Shown here one piece after another: positions 1,241 to 56,938 of a stretch of DNA of 64,000 nucleotides. Under the pieces are notes generated by a model, which saw only the letters and a list, made by a program, of their open reading frames with translations, was not told the DNA's origin and searched no databases. Position 1 is the first letter of the stretch. Every line of letters begins with the position of its first letter. Origin of the DNA: Thalia democratica (taxonomy: Eukaryota); contig OZ241831.1 of the NCBI GenBank assembly GCA_965202585.1, positions 52,948,001 through 53,012,000 of the forward strand, read 5' to 3'. The position numbers and the translations under genes were made by a program.

Positions 1241-2585
1241 TCGATAATCGACGTTGAAAAAAAATGAACCACAAGTAAAATAGCATAGTTTTATTATAAG
1301 GCAAGAAAAGTAAATTTTCACCAGAGCAGAACTGTTTTTGTTATAAAAGACCTTTTGTTCAAAAACGACTATTCGGGTAAAATTGAGTTCGTACAAAAGT
1401 GAATCTTCGTGCATAATTGTCCCTTTGTGATTTTTAGACTACCATACCTTACTTATCAATAAAATTATTATTAGCTTAAGTGTTTAAAATAGTAAAGATC
1501 GTAAGCATTGAAAACCAAATTATTATGCAACCAGAAATTAAACAAAACTATTATTCACACCTGAATGTAAAACCTATAAAGCTAGTAAAAATCGTTAAAT
1601 ACAAATAATTTTGCAACTAAAGAAACGAATCATGCTTTAACAAATTTGTAGCTAAAAGTTCATTAAAAGTACAGTCGTTAAGCATCAAGTATTAGTTATT
1701 TTTATGTAAAATATTAAGTAAAATGTATGCTAAATAGATTAAATTAGTTATGTTATTATCTATTTGCTGTAGAAATTACAAATATGAGTTGGTTTTTTCA
1801 GTTCATTAGTATTTTCTTAGTATATGTTATCCATAATAAATAAAATCAAGTTTGGTAAAAGTAGTGTTTTTAATCTGCTTTGTTTCGTTTAATGACAAGC
1901 CTATACTATAAGTTTTCTGGTTTTGGTATAATTCATTATAAATGATTAAAAAAATAATTTATCAGTGTCCGACTTTAGTGTTTGCTAAATATTACAAAAG
2001 ACACATATCAGGCAAGGTTTTAAACTATAAATCTTTACTAACAATAAATTATCTAGTTAAACAAATGTTTGTGTTTTATTTCATTTTTATGAAAACGTTT
2101 TTATTGAAACTATATGTCACTTTCAACTTTTATTCGTTGTTAAAATTATGTTTACATATAATAGAGAAGACAACAGTATTCGTTTTTTTTTCCTCATGTT
2201 TATTTAAACGTATAAAATAACTTGTAATATATAGATCCTAAAACATTAAATAATTACGATTAAAAAAACAGAAAAAGAATTTAGAAATTTTTCTAAGAAA
2301 ACTTGCAAAGCATTTTCCTCAAGAATTTTTTGAAGTAAAGAAACCGAAGTGGGATTAACATTAACACCTAAAACCAAATAGACACATAAACAAATTCAAT
2401 TAAAAACATCTTACTATTATTACTTTTTAAACTTAGAAACAAAAAGTTAAAATAAAAAACTTAGAAACAAATAAATTAAAGTTAAATGTTAACCCAATTT
2501 CATTAACTAAAAGTATTTTAAACTAATTTTACATATAACTTTTTCAAAATAATAAGACAAGACTGTTATTACATACCTTACTTTA

Positions 2586-4286
2586 TTATTCATCTAACTC
2601 AAATATAATTAGGTAGGCTGGAATTAAGTCCGAACGATTTCTTACACTACCGTAGTCGTTATTTCCAAATATACCTTCCCTTGTTACACTTTTCCTGCTA
2701 TCCTCGATAATGTTCTCCTTTTTCTGATCTTGATAGTTATCCTCTGAACAGACAACAAAAACAAATGACAACTTTTTTACTGTTTTATCAACTTCACAAT
2801 AATTACTACGACCAACATGTGTTGCTAAACTTAAATTTGTTGTAGTTTGTTGTAGTGCTGAGTTAAAAGTTTTTAGGCCGGTCTGATAATTAAGATAACC
2901 TTTTGTCAGAACATATTTTACTTCATTTGCTTTAACACCATTTAGATAAAGGTACTTTTTTTGAAAGTTAAGAACTTCATTTTTGTCAGTAGGGTTAATT
3001 CTAAACATATGTCTAATTTTTGGCATAACTTTAGCATTTTTGTTATTAAATGAACGCAAAATTAACTTGTAATCATCATTATCTTTATGTAGAAGTTCTG
3101 TACTAAATTTTCTTTTTTCGTCATATTTTGTCTCATAAATGCTGCTTAATTGAAAAGAAAGCTGTTCTATGTTTGAACTAGTATGACATTCTAATGCAGA
3201 TAAGAAACATTTAATTTTTGCTAGATAGTTTCTATTAATTTCCTTCTTTAGCTCTTCTGTTATCATTATAAAGGAATACTCGGATAATTCATTTAAAAGA
3301 TTATTTTTTTCGTTAGTTTTTCGATTTGTATTATAGTTGACAGCATTTTTTGCAAATCTTTTTATTTTTAAACAGTTGTAAAGTATTCTCTTAACTATGT
3401 CGTATACACTTGTTTTTTCTTCAATTTCAATTAAATAAGCAGGCACAACTAAATTATGGTGAGCTAATACTATGTTTTCGTGATTTATATTTTGAAATGA
3501 GCCTTTTAAAATTTTTCTTTTATGGCTATCATACATATCTAGCGAAACTGTTTCAGTTTTAGGAGATTTCTTAAACCAATTATTAAATATTTTTACTGAT
3601 GGATCATTATTTAGATAATCTTCAAAGGACATTTCTTGTGGAAATAGACTACCTTGTAGGCATATCTCAGGACTAGGTACACTGTTAACAAAAAAGTATC
3701 TAAAGTTTTTAATCTTTTTCTCTTCTGTAGCACAACACTTACCGTAATCATATGCATAACTAAAACTATCAGTAAGATAAACTCCAGGTCCATAAGACCC
3801 CTTTTTGGATGGATTAAATCCTGTTTTTAAGATTCCTGCAACATTTTGTGCTTTAGTTCCATGAAGTAGAAGAATTTGGTTAGAATCGCTTGACTCAGTT
3901 GAAATGTTGACGTTTGACACTACTCGGTATATTTTAAAGCTATTAGTTTTCTGTCTAAAATCTAATTGATTTCTAGAGTATTTTGTAGTAAAATTATCAT
4001 TAATTATTATCGAACTTTTTAGGAGTTCGTAATCTGGATCATTTGTTTTCAACAGCTCAAGTTTGTATTTAAAACCAGGAAGCACATATTTTTTGAAACT
4101 TGCAATATCATATTCACATAACTCTTTAGCATTTTCAAATACCATTCCTTTTTCGTAATCATTTTTTACTACATTTATTTCCTCTTCCGCTTTCCTAACA
4201 ATATTTTGTAGAAAATTTCTACAACCAGGGTGACTTTTTGAAAACTTTTCAACTTTATTTTTAATTGACTGCATTTTTAAATTCAT
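2586..4286 (-). CDS. Tandem ADP-ribosyltransferase (PARP-like catalytic domain + degenerate PARP-like domain), copy 1, intact, 566 aa
   Basis: Uninterrupted 566-aa ORF. Domain 1 (~aa 73-289) has LLLHGT (H142), GSYGPGVYLT (Y170), AYDY and ENIVLAHHNLVVPAYLIEI, matching the PARP/ARTD catalytic fold. Domain 2 (~aa 393-564) repeats the layout (ELLHKDNDDY..FRINP..LYLNGV..FVFVV..LIPAYLIIF) without catalytic motifs. Confidence 0.9.
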   Translation of the reverse strand: MNLKMQSIKNKVEKFSKSHPGCRNFLQNIVRKAEEEINVVKNDYEKGMVFENAKELCEYDIASFKKYVLPGFKYKLELLKTNDPDYELLKSSIIINDNFTTKYSRNQLDFRQKTNSFKIYRVVSNVNISTESSDSNQILLLHGTKAQNVAGILKTGFNPSKKGSYGPGVYLTDSFSYAYDYGKCCATEEKKIKNFRYFFVNSVPSPEICLQGSLFPQEMSFEDYLNNDPSVKIFNNWFKKSPKTETVSLDMYDSHKRKILKGSFQNINHENIVLAHHNLVVPAYLIEIEEKTSVYDIVKRILYNCLKIKRFAKNAVNYNTNRKTNEKNNLLNELSEYSFIMITEELKKEINRNYLAKIKCFLSALECHTSSNIEQLSFQLSSIYETKYDEKRKFSTELLHKDNDDYKLILRSFNNKNAKVMPKIRHMFRINPTDKNEVLNFQKKYLYLNGVKANEVKYVLTKGYLNYQTGLKTFNSALQQTTTNLSLATHVGRSNYCEVDKTVKKLSFVFVVCSEDNYQDQKKENIIEDSRKSVTREGIFGNNDYGSVRNRSDLIPAYLIIFELDE

Positions 4287-4301
4287 TTATTTGTTTAACA
4301 G

Positions 4302-4322
4302 CTATAAAATAATTTTAGTTAG
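4302..4322 (-). other. 3' splice acceptor (CTAAC branch point + ttttatAG) 15 nt upstream of copy 1 ATG
   Basis: The minus strand reads aaaCTAACtaaaattattttatAG|ctgttaaacaaataaATG. Equivalent acceptors occur at 26107, 41215 and 63034. Confidence 0.55.
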
Positions 4323-4447
4323 TTTTTAATTATACTTTTGCACCACTTGTTTTTATAAACAACTTCAATACAACTGATAGTTAGGTAAATTTAAAAGAAT
4401 TATTTCTGAGGCACAACAGTCAGAGAGTGGTTTGTCCTGGCTGAGTA

Positions 4448-4482
4448 CCTGATGCCAGATTACCAACAAGAAATTTTATATA
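4448..4482 (-). promoter_or_regulatory. Core promoter of ART copy 1: TATA box (TATAAAA from 4480) and Inr-like TCA with A at 4450
   Basis: TATA-to-Inr spacing is 30 nt. The same arrangement recurs in the other three copies with spacings of 30, 31 and 32 nt. Confidence 0.55.
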
Positions 4483-6664
4483 GGCTTTTAATTAAGTTGT
4501 GAAAACATTCTACGCCAAGAGGAAAATTCAAGATAAAATCAACGATTCTAAACATTTATAAAAAATGTCGTAGCTAACCATTACATTATACAGTTTTATA
4601 AATAAAAAACTCTAAAAAAAATGAAGTCTAAAGCTCTCTGGCTAATACATTTATAAAGTGACACTATTTCACAGTGAAGTAGTTGAAAAGCATTTTTTAT
4701 AAAAGTTTCCAAAAGTCACTTTCTTATTAAAAAAGTTGTAACATTCGATATTCAACCATATAAGTTCAAAATTTAAACTGTTAATATATCTTACAAATGT
4801 TTAAGCAATTAAACATTATATTTTCATTTCAAGCTTGAATACAAATATAATTAAAACTGATAATGAAATAAATAATAATCTTATTACATTAAAACAATTT
4901 TTTAAATAGATTTCTCACAGGAATTAGGGCATACAATGTAATAGGGTACTATTTTTCTAAGCTCTATATAAAAATTGTTTTCAAGAATTAATAATTATGT
5001 TATTAACTATTAAGATAAAATCAGCTGTGTAAAAATTTTTGTATGAAACACAGTTTTTACACTGGTATTTGTTTGGAAATTTCACAAAAAAGTACCACAA
5101 GGTTCTCCCTTTTTGCCTAAAATAAAAAGCACCTTGTGAAACAAAATACCCAGATTAAGTATTATTAAACTAGCCTGAATCAATTTAAGATTATGATAAA
5201 AATCAATAGCCTATATATTATGCAATCCTGTAATTACTACAAACTATTTATTTACTAAAAATTTTCATATAAACAAATTATAATAACAAAATAAAAAATT
5301 GTTAAAAAAAATATATGAGATAAACACTTAATTTCAAATAACAAGAACTAAAATAAAATATATGAAAACATTCAAAGGATAAGTTTTGCAATAACTACTA
5401 GAAAGAGTTTTACAAATCATCTGAAAAATTGTAGAACTATTCAAAGTTTTATAAAATTTTAAACCAGCTTGAGTCTATAACAGCACTTTATATTATAATT
5501 TATTAGTTTCTATCCTAATAAGAAAAGCTTTAAAAAAAAGTTATATTTATATTGTAATAAAAACTTAGTTTTATATGAAAAAAGTATTAAAAATTTAAAT
5601 AAAACAGTCTTTGAAATAAAAAAATTGTTTAATTTTTGAATTATAAATGATGCTTTTCTGTTATAAACCCAAAAAAGTTTCAATTAAAGAGGACATTTTA
5701 TACAATTCTAAAATTTTCATACCAATTTTTAAAATATCATTGGAAGATGAGTGGTCTGAACTTGAATATCAGTTACTGCAAAAGATATATTTAACATTAT
5801 ACTTGAACAGTGCTTTTTAAAGTACTTGTATACAAAAGTTTAAGCTTGTTTGAATAAAAATTCAGAATAAATAATCTATTTAAAGTTATAAAAAAGGATT
5901 CTTATCTTTTTAAGTTTAATCAAACGTTTTAAATGACAAAACTTGAAATTTTACTAGTATTCAAAGTTTCACCTATTTGAGTCAAAAAAGCTATCTCGAG
6001 TTGTTATTGAGCTTTTTTCAAATCTGATTATTTTCTAAACTTTTTAAATTCAAAAAAAAAAAAAACAAGTTCTTAAAATAAGTTGTTTACAAAACACAAA
6101 ATATTTAAATATAATCTCATAAACAATCTTGAAAAAAAACTATCTTCAGATTATAATAAAAAAAAAACATCTTCAGCTTCTTAAGAAATAAATATCGTAT
6201 GTCAGCCAGAGTTTTAAATATAAGACTAAAAGTATCCGGAAATATTGAAAAATTACAAAGTACTCTGATATATCCTGAGTGTATTGTGATCTTAAACATT
6301 TCCTTAGTTTTTATAAAATTAAGGCTTTTTAAAAATTTTATCAGTAAAAATTCAAACTAATTTTTTTGTAATTAAAAAAATCCTATTTTTTTAAATAGTT
6401 AACTAATTTTTTTTTGACTAATATTTTAGATTGAGATAATGAGATTATGCTATACTTAGCTAATGAAAGTTGAAAATCATTTTTGCTAAAATGAAAAAAT
6501 ATAAATACATCGTTTGAAATTATTTAATTTTGTTGAGGCGCCTATAAGTTTAGAAATTTTATGGTGAATTAATTTATAATGCTATTCTTAATAAGGTTAT
6601 TTTTATATAAAATAAAAAGACAACAAAAGTAACTGGTTTGAAAGCTGATTGAAATAACCATAGA

Positions 6665-7111
6665 CATGGTTGTCAAAGGATTTTGTAATTTTCTTCCAGG
6701 TTAAAAAAATCAAGTTTTTAGTCCATTCTTAGTATACAATAAAGCTTGAGATAAATTAAGGATTTTAAATGTCTCATCTAGGTTTTTGAAAGTACAGGTT
6801 TTTTCGTCTATTTCTAGTTTAAAGTTTAGTTAAAGGTTTGAAACTGACTTAAGTAGAAAATAACATTTGAAAGATACTGTAAAGCTACTTTAATTGTTTT
6901 TTTTTAGAAAAATTAGATGATGATACAAAAGTTTCATCTATATTCTGTATGACTAATCTTTTGTTTCAATTTCAAATGTAAAAGTAGTTTGAAATTCAAG
7001 CCTTATTAGTTATTTTTGTTAATTTTTTCGGTTTTATTTTTCAAATATATCTTAAGTTCCATGTATTGTTAGCTTTAATTGTCAGCTTTAATTGGTTTTT
7101 TGGCAACCTAG
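6665..7111. mobile_element. Degenerate MITE of the (C/T)AGGGTTGCCAC-TIR family, predating the duplications
   Basis: catggttgtcaa...tttggcaacctag. Paralogous copies lie at ~28296-28503 and 44704-45108. Confidence 0.5.
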
Positions 7112-18311: not shown

Positions 18312-20198
18312 GGGTGAGTGTCACTTTTGCACGACCGTCACTTTTTCACGAGCGTCACTTTAGCACGAGGAAACACTTTTGCACGGCGACACTTTTGCAC
18401 GCAGGGTCACTATTGCACGAGGGGACACTTTTCACGTCGAATCTTTTGCACGGTGGGTCACTTTTGCACGAGGGGACACTTTTGCATGGAGGGTCACTTT
18501 TGTACGAGGAGACACTTTTGCACGGCGGAATTTTTCACGATGACAATTTTTTACGGCAGCATTGTTGCACAACGTCACATTTTTACGATGAAATTATTGC
18601 ACAGCGACATTTTGGCTCGATGACTTTTTCGCACGGAAAATCAATTTTGCATGCAGGCCGATTAAAAGTTTTTTAGCTACTACCAAGTCTGTAACATAAA
18701 AAGAAACTGAAAACTAAAATTTTATAATATACCTATATTAAAGGCAAAAAATGAAAGGTCTAAAATCTTAAACAGTAAAAGTTAATGTTAGAAACTAACT
18801 AACGAAAAATTAGAATAAAATTATTTATAAAAGATTCATACCAGGGACAATAAAGTTAGTTTATTTAGAAACTAGGATAAAAAATACTTCAAATGTAAGT
18901 AAGTTGTTCTAGTTTATTTTGAATTTTAATATATTAATAAACAACTATGCCTTTTTATGTATTTTACTATACGGTTACAAGTTTATTGTTCATATGATGA
19001 ACCTAGGCATCAAAACCTAGACCACTTAAACTGAAAGACATATATATATAAAAGATAAAATATATACTTTATATATTATCACAAATATAAAATCATAATT
19101 TGATATAAAATTTATAGGTTTTCATAAAAAGCAAACTTTTAACCACAAACTTATATTGATTTACGATTTGGTGTAGAACGATCAACATCAAGTATTTAAA
19201 TGCATTGACTAATAACAAAAATAAACCCTTACGCTCCAAGGACATTAACGATATGCTCTCATCGGCTTATTTCATGATCATGGAATGCTGGTGTAAGCAT
19301 CTCTTGATTTTTCTTATGAACATAAGTTCAAACTTCCAAATGTTACTCTCTCATTGGCTTATCATGATCATGCAACATTATTGTTATGAAATAATCCAAG
19401 TTTAAACCATGAAAAATGCGCTATTTTATTGCTCTTTTTAGTCTCACGCTAAACTAAAAAACAAAAATAAACAACAAGTAAAATCTGAAATACCTTTGCA
19501 CTTCATAAACTAAGTAAATCTTTGTTTTTAATTTAATTATTGTTTGAAATTTAATTAAATTTAAAATATTTATTCAACAACTATATAATGCTAATTATAA
19601 CATTTAGAGAAAACAAGTAAAAAATAATACTCAAAAGTTCTAAAGCCTTACTAAACTAATTTTATTTTCCTGTTTGAATAGTAACAAAATTCAGATTATT
19701 TTCAATTAATATATTCAAAACTGTTTTTATTTAAAATTAAAAATTTGTATTCATCTAGTTTATTTAATATAAGCTAAAATATATAAATTAATGAACTGTG
19801 GTACGTTATTATATTGTTCTACGTAAAATTTCAAACAAAGTCTTTGCTTTAAATTTTCATTAAAAAACTACCACATTTTATGTATTCAAAACAACTTAAG
19901 TTTAAAAGCGAATATTATTCAAAAAAAAAAATATTTAAATAAAAATGTCGCCGTGCAAAAGTGTCTCCTCGTGCAAAAGTGTCACCTCGTGCAAAAGTGA
20001 CGCCGTGCAAAAATTACCCTGCGTGCAAAAGTGATGCCGTGCAAAAGTGTCCCATCGTGCTAAAGTGACGCTCGTGCAAAAGAGTCGCTGTGCAAAAGTG
20101 TCTCCTCGTGCAAAAGTGACCCTTCGTGCAAAAGTGACCTTCGTGCAAAAGTGTCCCCTCGTGCAAAAGTGACGCTCGTGCAAAAGTGACCCGTTCCA
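18312..20198. mobile_element. 1.9-kb foldback-type element with long inverted ttttgcacga arrays and an 8-bp TSD (gatttaac)
   Basis: Left array 18312-~18660, right inverted array ~19945-20198 ending gtgacccgttcca. Flanks 18304-18311 and 20199-20206 are both gatttaac. Confidence 0.8.
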
Positions 20199-22429
20199 GA
20201 TTTAACAGTTTATAGTATACACTTTTACTTAAAAAATCACTAATATATGTTTTTAAGGAAAATATAATTTTATAGTGTCTGTATTTAATAATTTTTTCTA
20301 GCAAAACAAGTAAACAAATAAATAATATATTTTTAGATTGACGAGTGGTTTTTAAAAACAAGAAGCAAAATACCAGAGAATCAAGAACTTTGTACAAATA
20401 AGTAGTTACTAGATAGATGCAATGAGTGTAAAGTGAGAGAAGCTCAACAAAATGAGAGAATAAAAACGACAGGTTCTCTACAGAATGAAAGAATTAAGAA
20501 AAAGAAACAAGATAATTCAAAACTTGCTAATTAAGTTTACTTTTTTGCACGATATTTTGCTAATGTAGTAATAAAAATCAGTATTTAGTTAAAAGGTTTT
20601 TTTTTAATTACTTCTATTTAAACTATCTAGTTCTTACATGTTTTTAGTTTTAAAAATACTTTAGCTTTCATTCAAGACTAAACTAGTTCTAAAAAAAGAT
20701 GTTACTTTGCTTTTACTTATTAAACTGTTAATGTTTTAAAAGAATTTGTAACACGTTTATTTACTTTTTAATAAACTGTTATTTGCATAAATCCTGTAAT
20801 TGTGTTTTAATTGTTTTAAGCAATTGTCTATTTGTACTTATTTTAAACAATTACACTTGATAGTAAACTAGTGAAATTTCTTAAACATATCTTACATTTT
20901 TTAACTTTGCTGACAATGGTTAATTCAAATACTTTTTTATACGTAAAATATGTACAAGTATTTTAAACTAAGTTAATATAATTTGTAGTTAAACCTAAAA
21001 TTTTAAAGTATCTTCCAATAAACTAATAAACAATATTTTAAATATAGACGTTGACATGCAAACTGTTTAGACTTTGGAAACTATAAATGACAAACTGCAA
21101 AACATATTATAATATTCCCAAATATACTAAATTTGCAAAATCTTTATACTAAGTTATTACTTCTAGTTAAAAGAACTTAGATAATATCATATAATTTTTT
21201 ATTTTAAAGTTTTAAAGAAACCCATAGGGTGATAACTAACTAATGCTATACTTTTGTAATTTTAATATTTAGTACTAGTCGATGTCACTAACTATGTATA
21301 AAAACTACAACTTTTATTTTAACTAAAATTGATTTGATATATTTTAAAGTATTAAAATATATAACTTTACCGTGAGAAGGTATCAAAACAAGTATCAGAT
21401 TGCTTTTTGGTGATAAAATTTTAACTACTTATAACTTGAAATAGCTTATTACTAAGAATAACAATCAAATTAGTATTATTTAAAATAATCAAACGATTGT
21501 TCAAAATGGCATATAAAAAATTAAACCGTCGACTAATCGGTATACATATTTTTCTTATTGCAATAAAATAAAATATGTTCAAAGATAGTTAATAATATTA
21601 AAATTTAAGATTGTTTATATTTCTCTGTAACCTTTACTGATTAACAGTTAAAGTATCTTTAATTAACTTACATTAACTTTAATTCAATAACTTGACCGAT
21701 TGCTTAATGATTTTTATATAAAGCAAAACATTAAGCAACTATTGAGCTAACTTGTATCGTTAGTCAATTACTAGATAGTCTCAAAATTTAAAAGTTGTTT
21801 AATGTTTTTTTATAACTTTATCATAATCGCCATCAGTGACTTGCTTCTAAATACTTTAGTTAAATTAAGTAATTATATATTTTTCGTGACTAGCTTGATT
21901 TTGAAACATTTTCTTTTTGTAAATTTTATAAAAAATCATCAACAATACTAGCTTTTAGTGTAAAACCAGATTAAGCTCTGCAATTTAAAAAAATATTCAC
22001 TTGTTTAAGTATGGTTACGAAAAGTTTTAAGTAGCTAACTAATAAAAGATTATATACCTATAAAGATCAGAAGTTAAGAAGTTCATTAAATTTTAATATA
22101 TTATAATACTTTATGTTATGTTTTACAAATATGGACTATGATAGTTATTTGACAGTTTTTTTATCAGTACTAAAATTTTAAGTTATATATTCAATTATGA
22201 GTTAAATCGGCCTGATCGTAATATTTTTTTATTTAGGATCTGGCCGAGTCCTAAATATTTAAGGTATATTTAGTGTAAAAAGAGAAAAAACTTGGATATT
22301 TAGTTAACTGTGCTCAAAAATTTTCAAATTAGCTTTAATCTTATTTGTTGCTTTTTAAAGAACAAAGTTTCCTTTAAAGGTGTATAACATCTGAGAGAGC
22401 TTCTAAAAATTTTAACTCGTAGGCATTTG

Positions 22430-23600: not shown

Positions 23601-24394
23601 AAATTATCATTAATAACTAAAAAACAAAACTTAACAGCGCAAAACATCATTAAAAAAACCTATATCGGGCAGGACTTTAAATTATAATCGATTTATACAC
23701 TACTTAAAGTAAGTTTTATAAATAAAGAAACTTCTTTGTTTTTGTTTTTTTTAATATTTTTTATCATTTTTTTCTTATATTTTCTTGAATATGGACATGA
23801 CATGACATTTAACTGTATCCTGGTGAATGACTGAATAACCGAAAGGTTTTTTCGAACACCAATTATTTGGACCAAATTTTTGAGGGCTTTATTTTTCGTT
23901 TAATAAACATCTATAACATTTAACTTATATTCGTAGTTGAAAATACGTTTCTACATAATATAGAAAACAACACTATTTATTTTATTTTGTCATGTTTATT
24001 CAGTACATAAAATAACCTGTTAATCTAAAACTCCTAACATATTAAGAAACTATGATCTATAAATCAGAACAAGATTTTAAAACTTATTTCTATAAAAATT
24101 TTGAAAAAATTTTACTGAATAAGATAATTTGTTTTTAAATAGAAAAAGTAAACAAATCGGAAAAAGGTTAACACTAACACCTAAAAGAAAACATATACAT
24201 ATATAATGTCTGTTAAAAAGTCTTCCTACTAATATTTTTTGAACTTATAATAAATAATTAAAATTTTAAACTACTTTTTTTTAAGTTAAACTAAAAAATT
24301 TTAAATAATTTTTTTACTCAGAATATTAAAAACTATTTTAACTTAAAATTTATCAAAATGAAAAGAAAAGTTTTTGAGTATAATTTTTACTAAA

Positions 24395-26090
24395 CTATTC
24401 ATCGAACTTAAATACAATAAGGTAGGCTGGAATTAAATTCAAACGATTTTTTACAACTCCATTCTCCAAATTACCAAATATTCCTTCTCTTGTTACACTT
24501 TTCCTGCTATCCTCAATAACTTTATCATGTTTCTGATCTTCATATTTTTCTTTTGAACAGACAACAAATACAAATGACAACTTTTTTACTATGTTATCAA
24601 CTTCACAATAACTACGACCAACACGTGTTGCGAAATCCAAGTTGGTGGCAGTTTGATGTAGTGCAGGGTCAAATTTTTTCGGGCTGTTTAGATAATTAGG
24701 ATAACCATTTGTCAGAACATATTTTACTTTGTTCACTTTAACTCCGTGAAGATAAAGGTACTTTTGTTTGAAGTTGAGAACTTCATTTTTGTCAGTAGGG
24801 TTAATTCTGAACAGTTGTTTAATTTTTGGCAAGTTTTCAGTATTTTTATTACCAATTGAACGTAAAATAAACTTGTAATCATCATCTTTATTATGTAGAA
24901 GTTCTGTAGTAAATTTTCTTTTTTCGCCTTGTTTTATCTCATAAATGCTGCTTAGTTTACAAAAAAAGTTGTTTCATGATTAAATCAATGTCATTTTCTA
25001 ACGTTGTGGTGAGATAATCAATTTTTGCATAATAATTTCTTTTTATTTCCTTTTTTAAATGTTCTGCTATCATTGTGAAGGAAAATTTTGAAACTTTATT
25101 TTTAGAATTATCTTCTTTGTTTGTTATCTTATTTAAACTAGAATCAGCAGCACTTGTATACCTTACTTTTTTTAAGCAACTATAAAGTATTCCATCAACT
25201 ATATCACCTATATGAGTTTTTTCTTCAATTTCGATCAAATAAGCAGGCACTACTAAACTATGGTGAGCTAATGCTATGCTTTCTTTATCAACTTTTTGAA
25301 ATGAACCTTTTAAAAGTTTTCTGTTATAACCATTATGTACGTCTAATTGAGATTCTTCAGTGTTTAAGGGTTTACCTAGACTTTTGCTGTACATTTTTAT
25401 TGATGGCTCTTCATTAAGATAATCTTTGAAAGATGAATTTATTTGATACTGATTATATCCTCGACATATCTCAGGATTAGGTACACTGTTGACAAAAAAG
25501 TGTCTAAAATTTTTGGTTAAATTTTTTTCTGTAGCACAGGACTTACTGTAATCATATGCATAAGTAAATCTATTTGTAAGATACACTCCAGGTCCATAAG
25601 ATCCTTTTTCGGATGGTTTAAATCCAGTTTTTAAAATTCCTTCTACGTTTTGTGCACTAGTCCCATGAAGCAAAAGTATCTGGTTAGAATCGCTTGACTC
25701 TGTTGAAATGTTGTCGTTTGATACTACTCTGTATATTTTCAAATCTTCAATCTTACGTCTTATGTCTAGTTGATTACTAGAGTACTTTGTAGTAGTTTCA
25801 TCTTTAAATTTTACTGAATTTTCTAGGAGACTGTAGTCTGGATCGTTGGTTTTTAATAGCTCGAGTTTGTATTTAAAACCAGGAAGTACTGATTTTTTGA
25901 AATTTGCAACATCATATTTACACGACTCTTTTGCTTTTTCAAACAAGAATCCATTTTCGTAAATATTTTTTTCTTTACTTATTTCTTCGTTCGCTTTCAT
26001 AACGATATCTTGTAGAAAGTTTCTACAGTCAGGGTGACTTTTAGAAAACCTTTCCACTTTGCTTTTAATTAACTTCATTGTTAGTTCCAT
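24395..26090 (-). pseudogene. Tandem ART/pseudo-ART gene copy 2, with a +1 frameshift in a T7 run at ~24961-24967 (real truncation or assembly error)
   Basis: The 377-aa ORF (24957-26090) carries the complete catalytic domain (LLLHGT, GSYGPGVYLT, ESIALAHHSLVVPAY). The next frame resumes KLSSIYEIK.. and reaches the same C-terminus as copy 1 (stop 24395). Removing one T restores LFCKLSSIY, matching LSFQLSSIY in copy 1. Confidence 0.85.
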
Positions 26091-26106
26091 TTTATTTGTT
26101 AGAAAA

Positions 26107-26127
26107 CTGTAAATTATTTCTAGTTAG
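26107..26127 (-). other. 3' splice acceptor with CTAAC branch point upstream of copy 2 ATG
   Basis: The minus strand reads aaaCTAACtagaaataatttacAG|ttttctaacaaataaaATG. Confidence 0.55.
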
Positions 26128-26254
26128 TTTTTTGAAAATATTTTTTACTCTTTGTGTTTAAGCGAAACACAAATACAACTGATAGGTAAGTAAGTTTATA
26201 AAAAATGTTCTTGTAAGCACAACAGCCAGAGAGTTGGTTTGCCCTGGCTGACTA

Positions 26255-26289
26255 CCTGATGCCAGATTACCAAAGAGAACTTTTATATG
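26255..26289 (-). promoter_or_regulatory. Core promoter of copy 2: TATAAAA from 26287, Inr TCA with A at 26257
   Basis: 30-nt spacing, homologous to the copy 1 promoter. Confidence 0.55.
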
Positions 26290-29200
26290 TGCCTTTAAGT
26301 GTATTTAAGATATGGAAACACGCTAGAGGGAAAGATAAATTCAAGATAAAATCAATAATTATAGATATTAACAAATTTTTACAATGTAGTCAAACATAAT
26401 ATTAATATAATTCTAAAGAAAAACAAGTTAAAAAAAAAGTCTAAAGCTCTCTCTCTGATACATTCATAAAGTGACACTATAACACAATAAAGTAACTGAA
26501 TAGCATTTTTTATTACAGTTTACAAAATTTTCGTTTTTATTGACTTATTTGTAACATTCGACATCTAACTTTATAAGTTCAATATTCAAACTGTGAACAT
26601 ATCTTATGAATTTTTAAGCAATGAAATTTGAAACTTTTATTTCAAGTTTAAATACAATTATATATAAACTTTATAATTAATTAAAAAATAACTGTACCAC
26701 ATTAAATTATTTTTACAATTAATTACTTACTTGACTATGTTCTAGTGCAATACTTTTATAAACTATTATATAAAAGCAATAACTAAAATGGTATTTTTTT
26801 AATCTTAATGAAAATTATATTAACTTCTAAAATAAAGTCAGCCGTGTAAAATTTTTGTATGAAGTGCAATTTTTAGACTGATATTTGTCTGGAAACTTCA
26901 CAAAAAAATGCAACAGGGTTCTCCTTTTTTTGTATAAAACAAATAGCAGCTTGTGTGTCAAAAAACCTAGATTAAGATTTATCAAAATAGCCTGAGTCAA
27001 TTTACGATTGTGATAACAAACAATAGCCTAATTTTATTGCAATCCTGTAGTTGCTACAAACTATTTTATAACTAATAATCTTAAATAAATCATAAATATA
27101 TAAACATAATAACAAAAATAAAATTATTAAAAAATAAAAAGTTTTAAGATAAAAACTGAATTTCAAGTAACAAAAACTAGAATAAACTATTTAAAAAATT
27201 CAAATCCAAAGTTTTGCAATAATTACTAAGCCGAGTTTTACAAATCATCTGAAAAATTTTCAAACTTATCAAAATTGTTAAAAATATTAAACTACATAGT
27301 TGAGTCTATAACAGCACTCTATAAAGTAATTTAAAATTTTAAATCTGAATAAGCAAAGCTTTAAAAACAATTTTTTTTTTGTGGTAAAAACTTAGTTTTT
27401 TATGGTATAATCAATAAAATTTTAATAGAAAACTCTTTATAGTGAAAGAAATTTAAAGTTTTTTATTTATAAATGATTATTTCTGTTATAAACCCAAAAC
27501 ACATTTCTATTGAAGAGATCTTTTTAAAAGACGAAAAAAAAATATGCTAACTCTTTTTTAAAATATCATTTTAATTTGAGTGGTCTGAACTTGAATTACC
27601 AGTTACTGTAAAAAACATATTCAACATTATACTTAAAGACTGCTGTTTAAAAGTAGTTGTATACAAAACTTTAAGCTTGTTTAAAAAGAAATTCTGAAAT
27701 TAATTTAAGCTTGTTAAAAGCAAAAAAAAAAGTTCTTTTACAAAATTTTTTATAAAGTACAAATTATTCAAACTTAATTTCATTAACAATCTTGATGACA
27801 AAAATGTCTTCAGATTATTGAAAAAAATACTAAAACTATCCTGAGTTAAAAAGAAAATCCTGAGTCAACCGAAGTTCAAATAAAACTTAGAATATCTTAG
27901 ATAAAAAAAAAAGCTCTGATGTATCCTGAGTGTGTTGTGAACCTGAATTTTTCCTTAAATTTGATTAAAATAAAGCTTTAAAATTTTTTTATTTGTAAAA
28001 TTCAAAATAACTTTTAGGTAATACACAAAAAAAGTCTTACTTGTTCAAATAAATCACCAACTTTTGAACTGATTAAAACTGACAGTATGCCATATTTGAA
28101 TAATAATTGTCTAAGTTAAAAAACTTTCTAGCCGTAATAAAAATTTAATAACATCTTTAAAATTTTTAACTCTGTTGAGGCCTGTAAGTTTGTAAATTTA
28201 ATGATATTTCATTTTTGGTTAGTTTTATATTACCTATAAAGAAAAACAAAATCTAACTGGTTTAGAAGCTTATTAGAATAACCATAGACAGGGTTGTCAA
28301 AGGACTTTTGTATATTTCTTCTAGGCTTAAATTTTTTTTTGATTTATTAACAGTATTAAATCAAACTTAAGATTAAAAAAGTTCTTGAGAAACTAGTTTT
28401 AGGTTTTAAAAAGTTTTATTTTAACAACTGTCAAATTTCAGGGTTTTTAGTCTAAATTATTAGGCTCTAAGTTTTTCCAGGAGTTTAGGTTTGCTGGCAA
28501 CCAGGAACATTAGAAAAAAATTTAAAGCAATGTATAATATGTTTTCAAATAAAAATAAATTATTAATACAATATTTTTTTATCCTATATATAGATTGCTA
28601 CACCTAGGTAAAATTGTGTTACTTCACATGTAGAAGAAGTTTAAAACTACAGGTGTATACAGGGTTTTAATAGTTTTAAAGAAATTTTATGTTCTTTACA
28701 AATGTTCTTCAATTGAAAATTGTTCAAGGTTTTTTTGCACAAAATTTAAAATTCCAGATTTTCTATGATTTCAGGTTTTTTTGCAACCCTGTATAGATAT
28801 AAGAAGTTATATGAAAAATAAATAAATTAACTAACTGCAAAAACAAAACTAAAATGAAAAAAGCAAAACATGACAAAAAGGGATCAGTGCAATGATTCTT
28901 GATTATATTTAAACAAATTATGTTAACTGAAAACAAAATAAACTTAGAAAACATACTTTTTTTTTTGTAAAAATATTTACAATAAATTTTGTTTTTATTA
29001 AATTTTTCAAATTTTTTTTAAATAAACTTATAAAAATCTATTTTCAGTAAAAAGTTAAATTAATAAAAAAATATAAGCTGGTGCAAAAGTAGTAGATGTA
29101 GTAATTAGTATTAAGATACTAAAAGATAAAACAGGTAAAGAAATTATTTTATTGGATTTTGTTTACATAAAATACTAATATTTAAAGCAATCTGTAAGAT

Positions 29201-33347: not shown

Positions 33348-35047
33348 TTTTCTGTTGTAGGTCTACGGTCAAAATTGGCGTAATAAAGTTTAAGTTGTAG
33401 TTTTTTATGAATAAAAAGTAAAGTAGCTTATTTCTATCGAGGAAATTAGCCAAAACACTTAAAGTTGTTGTGACAGTGACCAACAGTAAAAATATTTTCA
33501 GCTAAAAAACTTAAGGTCACAATTTTCGGGTTTAAGTAGTTGTGTTTTTGAGAAAAATACAGTTTAATTTAAATTTTTTGGGAAAAAGTCGGAAATTAGC
33601 CTATATATGGAGGTTTTTCGAAATATGCTAAAACTTACCTCAAGAACTTTTTGTAACGATTGCAAACTGTAAAAAAAAATTCAACTTAAAAAAAAATAAC
33701 ATTTTTCGGTTTATACTGGTTAAAGTTTTTTTTCTTGATAAAATCGGAAAATAGCTTACACATTAAGATCTTTCAAAATCAGCTGAATCTTTGAACATGA
33801 AGTTATTAAAACGATTTATAAGTATATAAATAAATTATGTATTATAACGAAAATCAACATCGGTTTATGACGGAAACTTGAATATGTATTCTTTTCCCAT
33901 CTTACAGATTGAGTTACGTTTTTTTTCAACTTGTTTTAATTGTTTTAAAAAAGTAAAAGTTTTTACAATTTTTTAACACATAGTTCATGTTATACTGTTG
34001 TTAATGCTTAAATACAAACATTTCTCCAAATTAATCATGTAAAGGGCGGCTATATATTATGCTTGATGTATTTGGATTATTAAATTAATTTGTTTTAAAA
34101 CTTTGATTTAAAATTACTAAAACATTTCTTTATCAAACATACAGTTTATTTTAATCGACACTTTTCTAAAAGAGTTTCAAAGTCTATATTTTTATTGTTT
34201 AAATACGCAATTTTAAAATGAACTTTTTAAGATAATGTTGCCAGTTTATTAAAAACTTATACATTTTAACTGAGGCAAAAAAAAGTCACTGTTTGCTTCG
34301 CAGAATAAAGTTTTTAAGACTAACAAAAGTTTTTTTAGTGGTTTTTTGTTTGTTTTCAAAAATGTTAGCATTTACTCAAGTTAGTTTAAAGTTTGTTATA
34401 AGAACGTCTTCAACTTTTTTAGAACACTTGGCTTTAAATTGCAATTTAACAACTTTTTTTCATATATAAATACAACTTATACTTCAAATAAACAAGACAT
34501 GTTTGTACTATCTCATTATTTTTTCACAAAGAATTAAAAGTTTAGGTTTTTTAAATCGGAAATTACAAAAAATTTGAAATTTAGCCTATAGATGAAGATA
34601 TTTAAAGTCAGCTTAATCCTGTCACGAGAAACTGTTGTTATGAATGTCAGCTTAACGAATTTTTGGCTGAAAGTTCTTAGGCTACATTCTTGGTAAATAC
34701 AGTTTAGGTTGTTGTTTTTATAAAAAAAAGAAATACACTATATTTAAAGTTTTTCTTAATAAGCTAAACCTTTTTCAAAAAGTTGTGCAATTTTTCAAGT
34801 TTAAAAAAGTTTAACTTTAAGCCATGAGGTCGTATATTTGGTCCCATACAGTCGTTCACTTTAAGAAGAATCGGAAAAAAGTCTAAATATTAAGCTTTTG
34901 CCAAGTTAAATTAAACTTTGTAAAAGAAGTTGACGTTACGATTGCCAACTATAAAACTTTTTCAGCTAATCATTATGAGGTCCAAATTTTTAGGATATTA
35001 CAATGTGAATTGATTTTTTTTTGAGGAAAACCATAAAATTAACTAAT

Positions 35048-35305
35048 AACACTACAACTAGCACATCACAGTAGCTTACAACACTTCAACTAGAACATCA
35101 CAGTAGATTCTAACACTACAACTATCACATGACAGTACATCACAACACTTTAACTAGAACATCACAGTAGACTGCAACAATATAACTATCACTTCACAGT
35201 AGATTACAAAAATACAACTATCACTTCACAGTAGACTGCAACAATACAACTATCACTACACAATAGATTGGAACATTACAATTATCACTTTACAGTAGAT
35301 TGCAA
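35048..35305 (-). repeat. ~8 copies of the 32-bp minisatellite, inverted relative to 53419-55164
   Basis: Units of the form aacactacaactatcacatcacagtagattgc are the reverse complement of the large array unit. Confidence 0.8.
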
Positions 35306-40600: not shown

Positions 40601-40904
40601 AAATTTCTTAAATTTAAAGTTTTTTAAGGTTTTTTTGCCTAAACTATTAAATTAAAGATTTTTCCAGGATTCAAGGTTTTTTGGCAAACGTGCTTTAGAT
40701 ATAAGAAGTTATAATGAAAATAAACAAATTATTTTACTATAACAATAAAACCAAAATGAAGAAAGCAAGACATGACAAAAAGGGATCATTTTTTTGTGCA
40801 TGAATTTTGCAATTTTGTTTCATGAAACAAAAGTATTTTTGAGTTACTAGAACTGCTTAACTCTTTCGAAGTTTTTTTATTTGGGAAAACTCTTCAAATA
40901 AAAT

Positions 40905-41196
40905 GTTGTCTTTTTTAACTGAATTTTCTAGAAGGTTATAGTCTAGATCGTTGTTTTTCAAAATCTCCAGATTGTGTTTAAAACCAGGAAGAGCAGGTTT
41001 TTTAAAATTTTGCAACATAATATTCACAAAACTTATTAGCTTTTTCTAGCACCACTCCTTTTTCGTAATCATCTTTTTCTTTATTTATTTCCTTTTCTTT
41101 TTTCTTAACAAAATTTTGCAGAAAGCTTCTACAGTTAGGGTGGCGCTTTGAATATATTACAATTTTATTTATTTTGGATTGCATTGTTAGATTTGT
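40905..41196 (-). pseudogene. Truncated 5' fragment of the ART gene (copy 3)
   Basis: MQSKINK..SKRHPNCRSFLQN..YEKG..CEY then, after a frameshift, LPGFKHNLEILKNNDLDYNLLENSV. The first ATG codon is changed to ACA. Homology ends before the HGT motif. Confidence 0.9.
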
Positions 41197-53405: not shown

Positions 53406-53418
53406 ATACTTGTTGAAA

Positions 53419-55164
53419 TAGTGTAGTGTTGCAACTTAATGTGATGTGATAGTTGTAGTGTTGCAATTTTTTTTGATGTGATAGTTGTATTGTTGCAGCT
53501 TACTGTGGTATGATAGTTGTAGTGTTTTAACTTAATGTGATTTGATAGTTGTAGTGTTTCAGTTTACTGTGAAGTGATAGTTGTAGTGTAGTAACTTAAT
53601 GTGATGTGATAGTTGTAGTGTTGCAGATTACTGTAATGTGATAGTTGTATTGTTGCAATCTACTGTAACGTGATAATTATAGTGTTGCAACTTAATGTGA
53701 TGTGATAGTTGTAGTGTTGTAACTTAATTTGATGTGATAATTGTAGTGTTACAACTTACTTTTATATCATAGTTGTATTGTTGCAGCTTACTGTGATATG
53801 ATAGTTGTAGTGTTTTAACTTAATGTGATTTGATAGTTGTAGTGTTTCAGTTTACTGTGATGTGATAGTTGTAGTGTTGCAGCTTACTGTAATGTGATAG
53901 TTGTAGTGTTGCAACTTACTGTTATGTCATAGTTGTATTGTTGCAGCTTACTGTGATATGATAGTTGTAGTGTTTTAACTTAATGTGATTTGATAGTTGT
54001 AGTGTTTCAGTTTACTGTGATGTGATAGTTGTAGTGTTGCAAACTACTGTGATGTGATAGTTGTATTGTTGCAGCTTACTGTGATGTGATAGTTGTACTG
54101 TTGCAAACTACTGTGATGTGATAGTTGTATTGTTTCAGCTTATTGTGATGTGATAGTTGTAGTGTTGCAATCTACTGTGAAGTGATAGTTGTATTGTTAC
54201 AAACTACTATGATGTGATAGTTGTATTGGTGCAGCTTACTGTGATGTGATAGTTGTAGTGTTTCGACTTACTGTAATGTGATAATTGTATTTTTGCAATC
54301 AACTGTAACGTAATAGTTATAGTGTTGCAACTTAATGTGATGTGATAGTTGTAGTGTTGTTACTTAATGTGATTTGATAGTTGTAGTGTTGCAACTTGCT
54401 GTGATGTGATAGTTATATTGTTGCAGCTTACTGTGATATGATAGTTGTAGTGTTTTAACTCAATGTGATTTGATAGTTGTAGTGTTTCAGTTTACTGTGA
54501 TGTGATAGTTGTAGTGTTGCAACTTACTGTAATGTGATAGTTGTATTGTTGCAATTAACTGTAACGTGATAGTTATAGTGTTGCAACTTAATGTGATTTG
54601 ATAGTTGTAGTGTTGTAACTTAATGTGATGTGATAGATGTAGTGTTTCAGTTTACTGTTATGTGATATTTGTAGTGTTGCAACTTATTGTGATTTGATAG
54701 TTGTAGTGATTTAACTCAATGTGATGTGATAGTTGTAGTGTTTCAGCTTACTGTAATGTGATAGTTGTTTTGTTGCAGTTTACTGTGATGTGATAGTTGT
54801 AGTGTTGCAACTTACTGTTATGTTGTAGTTGTAGTGTTTTAACTTGTTGTGATGTGATAGTTGTAATGTTGTAACTTAATGTGATGTGATAGTTGTAGTG
54901 TTGTAACTTGTTGTGATGTGATAGTTGTAGTGTTGTAACTTAATGTGATTTGATAGTTGTAGTGTTTCAGTTTACTGTGATGTGATAGTTGTATTGTTGC
55001 AATTTATTGTGATGTGATAGTTGTATTGTTACAGCTTACTGTGATATGATAGTTGTAGTGTTTTAACTTAATGTGATTTGATAGTTTTAGTGTTTCAGAT
55101 TACTGTGATGTGATAGTTGTAGTGTTGCAATCTACTGTAACGTGATAGTTATAGTGTTGCAACT
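53419..55164 (+). repeat. 32-bp minisatellite, ~54 copies, consensus gtgatgtgatagttgtagtgttgcagcttact
   Basis: Regular 32-nt periodicity. Variant patterns recur at 160-nt spacing (agttgtattgttgcagcttactgtgatatg at 53771 and 53931). Confidence 0.95.
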
Positions 55165-56938
55165 TTAGTTATAACTTTAAAATTTTTTAAGTTTAAAATT
55201 ATAAGTTTTTCGAAAATTATTAATGCTTTAAGCACTTACTTACGCTAATAATGTCACAAATTGTTTTTAGGCTGCAGCATTGATTTGATGAAGCTAGATA
55301 ATTCCATACTTCCTGTAAAAAAATTACCATAATAAATTTTTTTTAATAATTATAGCTTCAAAGGAACTTCTATAAAACAAAAGTGCTATTAACATTCGAG
55401 ATCACACTGAAAATAAAATCATCATGACCATACTGTTTTTTTACCTATCACTGCTTTGAAAACTCTATAACACATATTAACACATATTTACTGTTAATAG
55501 AATGCATTTTTTAATTTGGTTAAAAATATATAATAACTAAGACTTTTTATTGTTACTTATTTTAGCTGTTTATAATTTAACTAAACCTGAAATGAAACTT
55601 AATTTATAAAGCAACATTAAAACATACATTTTTATTTGATTTTACTTAAACTTTAAGTTACATAATTTATGCTCTTCAAACAGAAAAACATCATTAAATA
55701 TTTTTTATTTCATCTTTTTTATTTTTTTTAATTTATCAACGGTTGCAAAGAAAAGTTTTAGGTTTATGAACTGAATGTTCGGCGTTAAGAGTTCTCAATA
55801 AATTGAAAGAAATGTTCAGTAAATTTAAACATAAGTAAAGGTTTTGTTTGTTTAAACTACTATTAAACAAAACAGAAGTTAATTACAATTTAAATGAGAA
55901 GAAAATGAGGTTAAGGTTTAAAAAATAAATCAGAATGAGAATCTTGAAATCTTGATCAAATAAACCATAATTAATATATATAGACAATTTTTTTTATATA
56001 ATTTTATTTATCACAACCCTTTCTTTACAAATTTAGCGTTTTTTAATTAAAATTCATAAAAGCTTCTTTATTCACAAAAATTATAAACTTACTAACTTTA
56101 AAAAAACACTTAACTAGTTACGAATAAAAAATACTTTTCTAAATAAAAAATGTTTGTGCAAGTTATTTGATAAAAATAACGAGGTTATAAAAATCTTGTT
56201 AAGGAAAATCTTATCTAAAGCATATAAAACTTTTTATCCAATTAACAAAATAAAAGGCAAAATTTATTTAGATATAATACAAAAGTTATACAACAAATTA
56301 CATCTAATAATGTCTAATAACAAAAAAATTTATATAAAATCTATAACTTTTATTTGAAGTATCAAAAATGTTTTAACAGTTTACAAAAGTCAAAAAGCAA
56401 AATTTAGTCAGACTTTGCTTTTAATATAGATAATTAACAAACTAAGCGAAACTCATATAAAAATACCTGATTTGCAAGCTAAAATATTTGTAAATAATTA
56501 ATCTAACCAAAAATTGTAAATTAATCTGCTATTTGTAGGTTATTTTACAACTATAAGACTATATTACAAAAACAACTAGAAACATTTAATCGTAGCAACT
56601 TTTACTGAAACACAAAGTTAAGTTAAGCCAGAATAAGTTATAAATACAAGTTTAAAAAACAAAGCAAAATCTATGTAAAAGTTCAGCATTGTATACTAAC
56701 AAAACTAAAATTTGTAATATATCCTATAAGCATTAATATCTAGTCGCTAAAAAAGTAATCAATAACATCTAATGTTTCTGAAAACAAATACAAATTGAAT
56801 TCTTATCACAATTAGCATTCAATAAACAAAGTACACAAATAATTTTGAATATTGGAAATAGTTCACTTTTTACAACTATAATATTAATATTTTTTGAATA
56901 AGCCTAATATAAATAACAAACAAAATTGATCAAAAGCA

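Follow-up and report, generated by a model that had tools for sequence, protein, structure and literature searches.

Among the ADP-ribosyltransferases (ARTs) of the PARP superfamily are enzymes of the mono-ADP-ribosyltransferase type, for example PARP10, PARP14, PARP15 and PARP16, as well as pseudo-enzyme domains (ZAP, TASOR, RCD1), which are important regulators and have each arisen alone. The gene described here lies in a 64,000-nt stretch of DNA from Thalia democratica (the window, to whose positions the feature coordinates refer). Its product carries a PARP-type ART module (ART1) followed by an internally duplicated, catalytically degenerate second one (ART2), an architecture that an earlier note on this DNA had proposed and that is borne out by profile and fold evidence. 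Selection acts on the two modules in inverted fashion: ART1 is most constrained around the site for nicotinamide adenine dinucleotide (NAD), and ART2 everywhere except there.

Several described systems come close. TASOR has been described as a pseudo-PARP (PMC7532188). The Gig2 genes of fish and amphibians are induced by virus and by interferon; their proteins have two or four tandem units that are highly similar to each other, they show lineage-specific expansions, and distant homologs occur in marine metagenome samples and in algae (PMC3617106). The A components of binary toxins (VIP2, iota Ia, C2I, CDTa) contain two similar ART-fold domains, thought to result from gene duplication, one of them catalytic and the other a non-catalytic adaptor (PMC4179152).

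The Thalia protein shares with the PARP superfamily (PF00644) a first module that scores above the Pfam threshold and has an invariant His and Tyr, and folds that match PARP1-4, 10, 15 and 16. As in the mono-ART PARPs, the third triad position of ART1 is without Glu. It differs from the superfamily in its short His-Tyr spacing (28 residues, with the loop GSYGPGVY), in having Asn, Ser or Lys at the third position rather than Ile, Leu or Tyr, in the lack of macro, WWE, zinc finger and WGR accessory domains, in the second degenerate ART within the same chain, and in being encoded by an intron-free gene with at least 77 copies. With the pseudo-PARPs (the C-terminal domain of PARP13/ZAP, DUF3715 of TASOR, RCD1/SRO1), ART2 has in common a PARP fold without the NAD-binding triad, kept by selection. 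Those domains, however, either occur singly or are joined to domains of other kinds, whereas ART2 is the internal twin of an apparently competent ART in the same polypeptide, and to none of them is it specifically related in sequence.

The likeness to Gig2 is at the level of motifs. Both consist of small PARP-like units that match PARP weakly, and both show the pattern HGT-x8-I[IL][RK]xGFxxSxxGxxGPGVY with a His-Tyr spacing of 28 residues, as against 32 and a different loop in PARP11 (PMC3617106 Table S1). In contrast to the tandem units of Gig2, the duplication here is ancient and the second unit is degenerate; the C-terminal halves also look different, and no significant alignment to a named Gig2 protein was obtained in word-index profile searches. 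The binary-toxin A components of Clostridium and Bacillus are the clearest precedent for a live ART joined to a dead ART twin, but this likeness is an analogy only, homology being confined to the ART superfold. These components belong to toxins that bacteria secrete and fall in the R-S-E (cholera-toxin-like) clade; of their two domains it is the N-terminal one that is dead, and it serves to dock the B component. The R-S-E motifs (Arg, Ser-Thr-Ser, Glu-x-Glu) are absent from the Thalia protein, where ART1 is of the H-Y type and the structural neighbours are all PARPs. Full-text searches of the literature for PARP catalytic domains in tandem or in duplicate gave nothing relevant. Pseudo-PARPs and tandem Gig2-like units being already known, the family is not a categorically new system; what the present analysis adds are the inverted selection pattern and an estimate, from exhaustive search, of how rare the family is.

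Internal duplication

The two halves of the protein repeat the same motifs in the same order. All six motif pairs listed in the earlier note are present in the open reading frame (ORF) in the order it gave, and five of them are aligned by profile-profile comparison: LELLKTNDPDY with TELLHKDNDDY, KIYRV with HMFRI, LLLHGT with LYLNGV, YFFV with FVFVV, and VVPAYLIEI with LIPAYLIIF. Using profiles of 29 sequences, hhalign matches ART1 to ART2 over 172 columns with a probability of 98.9% (expectation value, E, 2.2e-17), and with 51 sequences the probability is 99.0% (E 7.1e-18), amino acids (aa) 69-289 being aligned with aa 389-563. A reversed template and ten column-shuffled templates gave E values of 0.16-0.5, so that the score is not due to composition. 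When single sequences of the two halves are compared by BLASTP, the match is marginal (23% identity over 139 aa, E 0.036), which means that the proof of duplication is carried by the family profiles. When 1.84 billion representative proteins were searched exhaustively with HMMER, full-length family members were matched by the ART2 profile in at least two stretches. The internal duplication of the ART is real.

The remaining pair of the six, the helical segments KAEEEIN and ELKKEIN, is likewise found in the sequence, but the homology implied by its listing is unsupported. Homology of the helices preceding the two modules was rejected, since hhalign gives it a probability of 0.7%. Both ART cores follow long helices in the AlphaFold2 model, and judging by sequence these segments are not demonstrably part of the duplication.

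The first module

ART1 is the sole Pfam domain recognised in the protein. It passes the PARP model PF00644 with 45.5 bits against a cutoff of 26.7 (E 8.3e-12), the match spanning aa 117-287 and model positions 29-196 of 199, and its profile matches in the PDB are to PARP1, PARP15, PARP4, PARP3 and PARP14. H142, G143 and Y170 are invariant in 47 of 47 intact paralogs from the same genome. Among metagenomic homologs, Y170 is kept in all 28 and H142 in 27, the other having Gln.

The residue in register with the catalytic Glu of PARPs is N271. We take this to be the catalytic-Glu position because the Tyr of the P-x-Y-L-I strand follows it at a distance of 13 residues, the spacing of PARP1, tankyrase, PARP10 and PARP15; the registration is thus one of motif spacing, not of residue-level structural alignment. 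Paralogs have Asn (21), Ser (17) or Lys (7) here, and homologs Lys, Ile, Asn or Leu, while the neighbouring E270 is not conserved. A phmmer search of PDB sequences with the C-terminal 57 aa of ART1 returned chance matches only. A catalytic Glu is needed for elongation of poly-ADP-ribose, and with no Glu at the elongation position ART1 would be of the mono-ADP-ribosyltransferase type at most. It is an H-Y-x domain that could act, at best, as a mono-ADP-ribosyltransferase, an activity suggested by the residues it retains. Should ART1 prove to be an enzyme despite having Asn, Ser or Lys in place of the Glu, the catalytic repertoire of the PARP type would be wider than is now known.

The second module

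The C-terminal 230 residues, that is the ART2 half, match no Pfam family in a single-sequence scan. The ART2 profile alone matches human PARP3 (3c49) among PDB sequences with an E of 4.2e-4. A full-length AlphaFold2 model, built from a 51-sequence alignment with no templates, has a mean predicted local distance difference test score (pLDDT) of 81 and a predicted template modelling score (pTM) of 0.71; its Foldseek matches are PARP1-4 catalytic domains (E 5e-8), for a query range that the output does not give. Modelled alone (aa 336-566), ART2 reaches a pLDDT of 84.9 and a pTM of 0.81, and the Foldseek matches listed for this model are all PARP catalytic domains with a probability of 1.00 and E values from 6e-6.

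Comparison of the same model with 48,161 PDB chains by VIA gave PARP-type ART domains for all of the 17 best matches (Z 12.3-7.7). The best is PARP3 (3c49; Z 12.3, root-mean-square deviation 3.2 Å over 154 residues), and PARP1, 2, 10, 16, 4 and 15, the tankyrases and the pseudo-PARPs PARP13, TASOR and RCD1/SRO1 are also in this set (pseudo-PARP entries 4x52, Z 10.7; 6tl1, Z 8.2; 5ngo, Z 8.2; 7plq, Z 7.7). Below the top 17, nearly all matches are unrelated chains aligned to the long helix only, with Z below 6. An ESM Atlas search gave template modelling scores of 0.54-0.63 to PARP clusters. ART2 is thus predicted to adopt a PARP-type ART fold, as the earlier note had assumed for its domain 2.

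The NAD-binding residues have gone. The observation that the second module lacks GxGxY, made on the long copies in the window, holds in all 51 sequences examined, and the looser motif GxGx[YF] is found in 0 of 51 second modules. The position aligned to the catalytic His is, as had been read earlier, Asn in copies 1 and 4 of the gene and His in copy 2; across the 47 intact paralogs it is Asn in 33, Ser in 7, Lys in 3, His in 2 and Asp in 2, and His is found in 8 of 28 metagenomic homologs. Q479, aligned to Y170 of ART1, is among the most variable residues of the protein. As the His, the Tyr and the GxGxY loop are all lost, canonical NAD+ binding should be impossible for ART2.

Other residues are firmly kept. 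L460, G463, D529 and P556 are invariant in ART2, and Y464, R531 and Y558 nearly so; D529 is invariant in the 47 paralogs and 28 homologs alike, and R531 is present in 26 of the 28 homologs. The two-module architecture and the invariant residues of ART2 are conserved down to 23% identity. By its residues, then, ART2 is best classed as a pseudo-enzyme, its NAD-binding residues lost and its fold kept by selection.

Lengths of the loop that takes the place of the GxGxY/Tyr region differ by tens of residues, and divergent homologs have a loop rich in Cys. A CxxxC...CxC pattern occurs in this loop in P0025, P0026, P0028, P0029, P0032, P0033, P0035 and P0040, where it is possibly a small zinc-binding insert; it is absent from the lineage of the window.

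Selection on the two modules

The ratio of nonsynonymous to synonymous rates (dN/dS, ω) was obtained from Nei-Gojobori counts over 21 phylogenetically independent sister pairs with dS of 0.01-1, of which 20 entered the windowed and regional analyses. For ART1 as a whole ω is 0.53 (p 6e-16 against neutrality). ART2, whose reading frame and fold motifs had been noted as kept, does not evolve neutrally but is under purifying selection, with ω of 0.48-0.51 (p 1e-15 to 2e-22). The linker between the modules shows weaker constraint (ω 0.67, p 0.007).

Within the modules the distribution of constraint is reversed. The NAD core of ART1 (aa 139-182) has the lowest ω in the protein, 0.28, against 0.60 for the rest of the module (Fisher p 6e-7). 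The equivalent region of ART2 (aa 446-495) has an ω of 0.75, which differs from that of the ART1 core with a Fisher p of 3e-6. In the loop proper (aa 465-495) ω is 0.89 and not different from 1 (p 0.26), as compared with 0.44 for the ART2 scaffold (Fisher p 0.012). In other words, ART1 guards its NAD site, and ART2 guards everything except its former NAD site. The sites with most nonsynonymous changes over 20 pairs (nonsynonymous:synonymous) are Q479 (11.5:0.5), H490 (13:1), S494 (11:0) and K505 (10:0), and these fall within the ART2 loop or just after it.

Relatives outside the genome

A word-index search found 40 relatives, all of them unnamed proteins, down to 23-27% identity, and all the full-length ones share the two-part architecture. 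Two of them were traced to their contigs, which belong to marine metagenome assemblies of Tara Oceans. In the exhaustive search of 1.84 billion representative proteins, the ART2 profile matched 184 clusters at E of at most 0.001 and 58 at E of at most 1e-30. No named relative was found in either the word-index or the exhaustive HMMER searches, which gave unnamed metagenomic proteins only. The family is rare.

There are also single-module relatives, complete at both ends and 217-264 aa long, which carry the ART1 motifs LLxHGT, GSYGPGVYLT, FVFVNEI, DSxxRKI and AH..IPRYLI. The sharing of these motifs makes a one-module ancestor plausible, and such mini-PARPs probably represent the ancestral one-module form. 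They come from marine metagenomes (P0171, P0199-P0202 and P0164). The single-module relatives also have an invariant His five residues past the catalytic-Glu position (AH or CH before IPRYLI).

Possible roles of the second module

The explanation favoured here starts from a single-module mini-PARP ancestor, a unit that would have been duplicated head to tail within the gene. ART1, in which the His and Tyr for NAD+ binding and the short donor loop GSYGPGVY are retained, would most likely work as a mono-ADP-ribosyltransferase. Since the fold and motifs of ART2 are kept by purifying selection, this module would be a maintained pseudo-enzyme with a non-catalytic job, its former NAD cleft now a variable and nearly freely evolving loop. 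The job would most likely be that of a binding or targeting module for ART1, through recognition of a substrate or partner or through intramolecular regulation. This role would parallel that of the pseudo-PARPs of PARP13/ZAP, TASOR and RCD1, and that of the dead ART in binary-toxin A components. The family itself would gain and lose copies in the manner of conflict-driven genes; a large clustered family with gain and loss of copies and an ω near 0.5 is a pattern typical of such (immune-type) families. The duplication, the fold, the loss of catalytic residues, the pattern of constraint and the size of the family are shown by the present data. We infer that ART1 is active, that ART2 has a binding role and that the family is linked to immunity, and assign the general picture, from the mini-PARP origin through a mono-ART first module and a binding, targeting or regulatory second module to conflict-type turnover, a probability of roughly 0.5.

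Several considerations weigh against it. Asn, Ser or Lys at the Glu position is not known from characterised active PARPs, and ART1 itself could be inactive, or could use another residue such as the invariant H276. An overall ω of about 0.5 is also seen in young duplicates that are under relaxed selection and have no immune role. Positive selection at single sites is not detected, as none of the excesses would survive correction for multiple testing. The near-neutral, fast evolution of the former NAD cleft (loop ω ~0.9) and its plasticity in insertions and deletions would fit plain relaxation and a recognition surface equally well. Lastly, the only sequencing runs in which the locus occurs, none of them an RNA run, resemble DNA assemblies: they are unitig sets in which genic and intergenic DNA are covered alike, so that they permit no inference on expression.

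The strongest competitor, which is possible although we think it clearly less probable, is that ART2 is a structural partner only: it would form an intramolecular pseudo-dimer that stabilises or autoinhibits ART1, binding no ligand and leaving its loop free to drift. The tighter constraint on the ART2 scaffold than on the ART1 periphery (0.44 and 0.60), next to a loop that is near neutral, agrees with this, as does the pTM of the full-length model, which is compatible with a defined arrangement, and the existence of single-module relatives would make the second module an add-on. However, the conserved surface-type residues D529, S530, R531, G463 and Y464 suggest more than packing, and the modules are joined by a disordered linker of about 45 residues (pLDDT below 50), a feature that speaks against a rigid obligate interface.

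Rather unlikely is a second alternative, in which ART2 faces pathogens as a sensor or integrated decoy, an idea that goes back to the pathogen sensing suggested in the earlier note. Its degenerate NAD cleft would diversify so as to recognise the factors by which viruses or parasites target host ARTs, and ART1 would be released or directed as a result. The fastest-evolving stretch is indeed the former NAD cleft of ART2, the sites richest in nonsynonymous change lie in or just after its loop, and across homologs the loop carries large insertions and deletions and Cys-rich inserts; the family is large and clustered, with copy turnover and many broken copies, and resembles at motif level the virus-induced Gig2 genes of fish (PMC3617106). 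Nevertheless, ω never exceeds 1 in any window, the single-site excesses fail multiple testing, and relaxed constraint predicts the same pattern. Slightly less probable again is the more specific proposal that ART2, as a dead and rapidly evolving copy of the NAD cleft of the enzyme itself, is an integrated decoy trapping pathogen factors aimed at host ARTs and in this way activating or directing ART1, and that the cluster of at least 77 genes is an innate-immune receptor-effector repertoire. If true, this would be a previously unrecognised immune repertoire of a marine eukaryote, wholly made of PARP folds.

It is very improbable that ART2 is still an enzyme, with a non-canonical site (for example D529-S530-R531 plus E537/G538) and another substrate or nucleotide. 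D529 is invariant and R531 nearly so across the family, and some homologs have His at the His site, as such an enzyme might show. The DSx motif is, however, also present in ART1 and in the single-module relatives, which makes it a shared structural or acceptor-side feature rather than a new site; moreover the residue at the His site varies, a hypervariable region of variable length stands where the loop with the Tyr would be, and E537 is not conserved in homologs.

The least probable view, that the whole family is decaying or selfish DNA whose recent segmental duplicates drift to pseudogenes, with ART2 merely the more decayed half, can point to in-frame stops in 26 of 77 scored copies, to frameshifts in two of the three long copies of the window and to a high ω of about 0.5, but is largely refuted, since chance cannot preserve a 566-codon frame in DNA of 25% G+C, yet no fewer than 47 copies are intact; both modules have ω below 1 (p <1e-15), with structured constraint (0.28 in the NAD core); relatives from marine metagenomes keep the two-module architecture and the ART2 motifs down to 23% identity; and the frameshifts of copies 2 and 4 sit in homopolymer runs and may be assembly errors.

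On the favoured explanation, in which ART2 serves ART1 as a binding, targeting or regulatory module, the family would offer a live enzyme and its dead twin in one chain, and dozens of natural paralogs that differ mainly in the former NAD cleft of the twin. Such paralogs form a natural series in which to study what a pseudo-ART contributes to the catalytic module beside it. The family would also extend a little-studied mini-PARP or Gig2-like branch beyond vertebrates, and to copy numbers like those of immune genes.

Gene family and genomic context

The features of the gene and its relatives in the window are given in Table 1. The window has about 25% G+C and hardly any other long ORFs; it comes from a contig of 67.7 Mb in an assembly of 802 Mb and 1833 contigs, and the ORF finds itself there with 100% identity at C7:52950589-52952286. 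TAA, TAG and TGA are all found in-frame as occasional stops in broken copies and in no intact copy, and the standard genetic code therefore applies. By eye no signal peptide was noticed in the protein (a prediction tool was not applied), and by the same inspection the product would be of cytosolic type. The N-terminal helical region has no match in the Pfam scan, and the linker has the highest mean entropy in the protein.

Table 1. Positions of the gene, its parts and related features in the window
Feature	Position (nt)	Strand	Remarks
Two-module PARP-like protein ORF (copy 1)	2586-4286	-	intact, intron-free, 566 aa; stop codon 2586-2588
N-terminal helical region, aa 1-67	4086-4286	-	model helices 2-18, 20-46, 48-58; pLDDT ~88-94; ω 0.41
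ART1, PARP-type ADP-ribosyltransferase module, aa 69-289	3420-4082	-	NAD-binding residues kept
ART1 NAD-binding core, aa 139-182	3741-3872	-	LLLHGT ... GSYGPGVYLT ... YAYDYG
H142 of ART1	3861-3863	-	
Y170 of ART1	3777-3779	-	
N271 of ART1	3474-3476	-	registers with PARP catalytic Glu; model strand 271-275; not Glu
Inter-module linker, aa 293-338	3273-3410	-	partly disordered; pLDDT <50 at aa 315-333
Long helix before ART2, aa 339-376	3159-3272	-	also residues 4-41 of domain model; ω 0.40
ART2, degenerate ART1 duplicate (pseudo-ART), aa 389-563	2598-3122	-	by profile and fold matches
N449 of ART2	2940-2942	-	aligned to ART1 catalytic His by hhalign
ART2 variable loop, aa 465-495	2802-2894	-	in place of GxGxY/Tyr region of NAD cleft; pLDDT <50 at aa 468-473
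D529-S530-R531 of ART2, family-specific motif	2694-2702	-	corresponds to D253-S254 in ART1, DSxxRKI in single-domain relatives
Paralog copy 2	24398-26090	-	frameshift near 24960-24995, in T run; ART2 His site is His
Paralog fragment (copy 3)	40804-41193	-	aa 2-148 only, 42% identity (tblastn)
Paralog copy 4	61323-63018	-	frameshift near 62845-62862, in A run; both ART modules present
Duplicated genomic unit around copy 1	2119-5903	.	shared with copy 2 at 23916-27737

From 1163 first-look candidates, at least 77 scored matches were obtained in the genome of Thalia itself, with 52-97% identity, and most of these copies are located on contig C7 between 51 and 54.5 Mb (~3.5 Mb). Of the 77, 51 are without an in-frame stop. 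The 47 intact paralogs used above are ORFs of at least 545 aa. Among the long copies in the window only copy 1 is intact; the frame breaks of the other two, lying in homopolymer runs, may be assembly indel errors and not real pseudogenisation.

The duplication extends beyond the gene. In a blastn self-comparison, the units around copies 1 and 2 are 75% identical over 3.9 kb, and the unit of ~3.8-4.5 kb consists of the coding sequence with ~0.47 kb downstream and ~1.6 kb upstream. Carriage by a mobile element or virus was considered and is unlikely: there is no other ORF of 80 aa or more within the ~4.5-kb repeated unit, and the copies lie together on a single chromosome arm instead of being dispersed. 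Taken together, these two points favour tandem or segmental duplication over a transposon or provirus. Upstream of the gene, ~2.2 kb (4287-5903 and 6053-6705) is 69-75% identical to the upstream region of copy 2 (26091-28331). This conserved region, in which every ORF is shorter than 80 aa, may contain the promoter and an untranslated 5' exon.

The remainder of the window contains repeats of several kinds. A 32-bp satellite, whose consensus begins ATAGTTGTAGTG, occupies 53418-55165 with 54.7 copies and 82% matches, in a region where G strongly outnumbers C (skew of 0.36 for the 54-56 kb bin), and a related block of 270 bp lies in the opposite orientation at 35032-35305. At 400-800 there is a repeat of very high copy number: in runs X1-X3 its summed unitig depth is ~45,000, whereas the flanks reach a few hundred. 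Positions 466, 779 and 814 are the ends of many contigs. The repeat is probably a transposon that is short and abundant, or a satellite fragment. Two ORFs about 1.5 kb apart, at 18314-18676 (+) and 20014-20397 (-), translate as repeats of HEGTLLHGGSLL-type units, and look like a simple tandem repeat in an inverted pair rather than genes.

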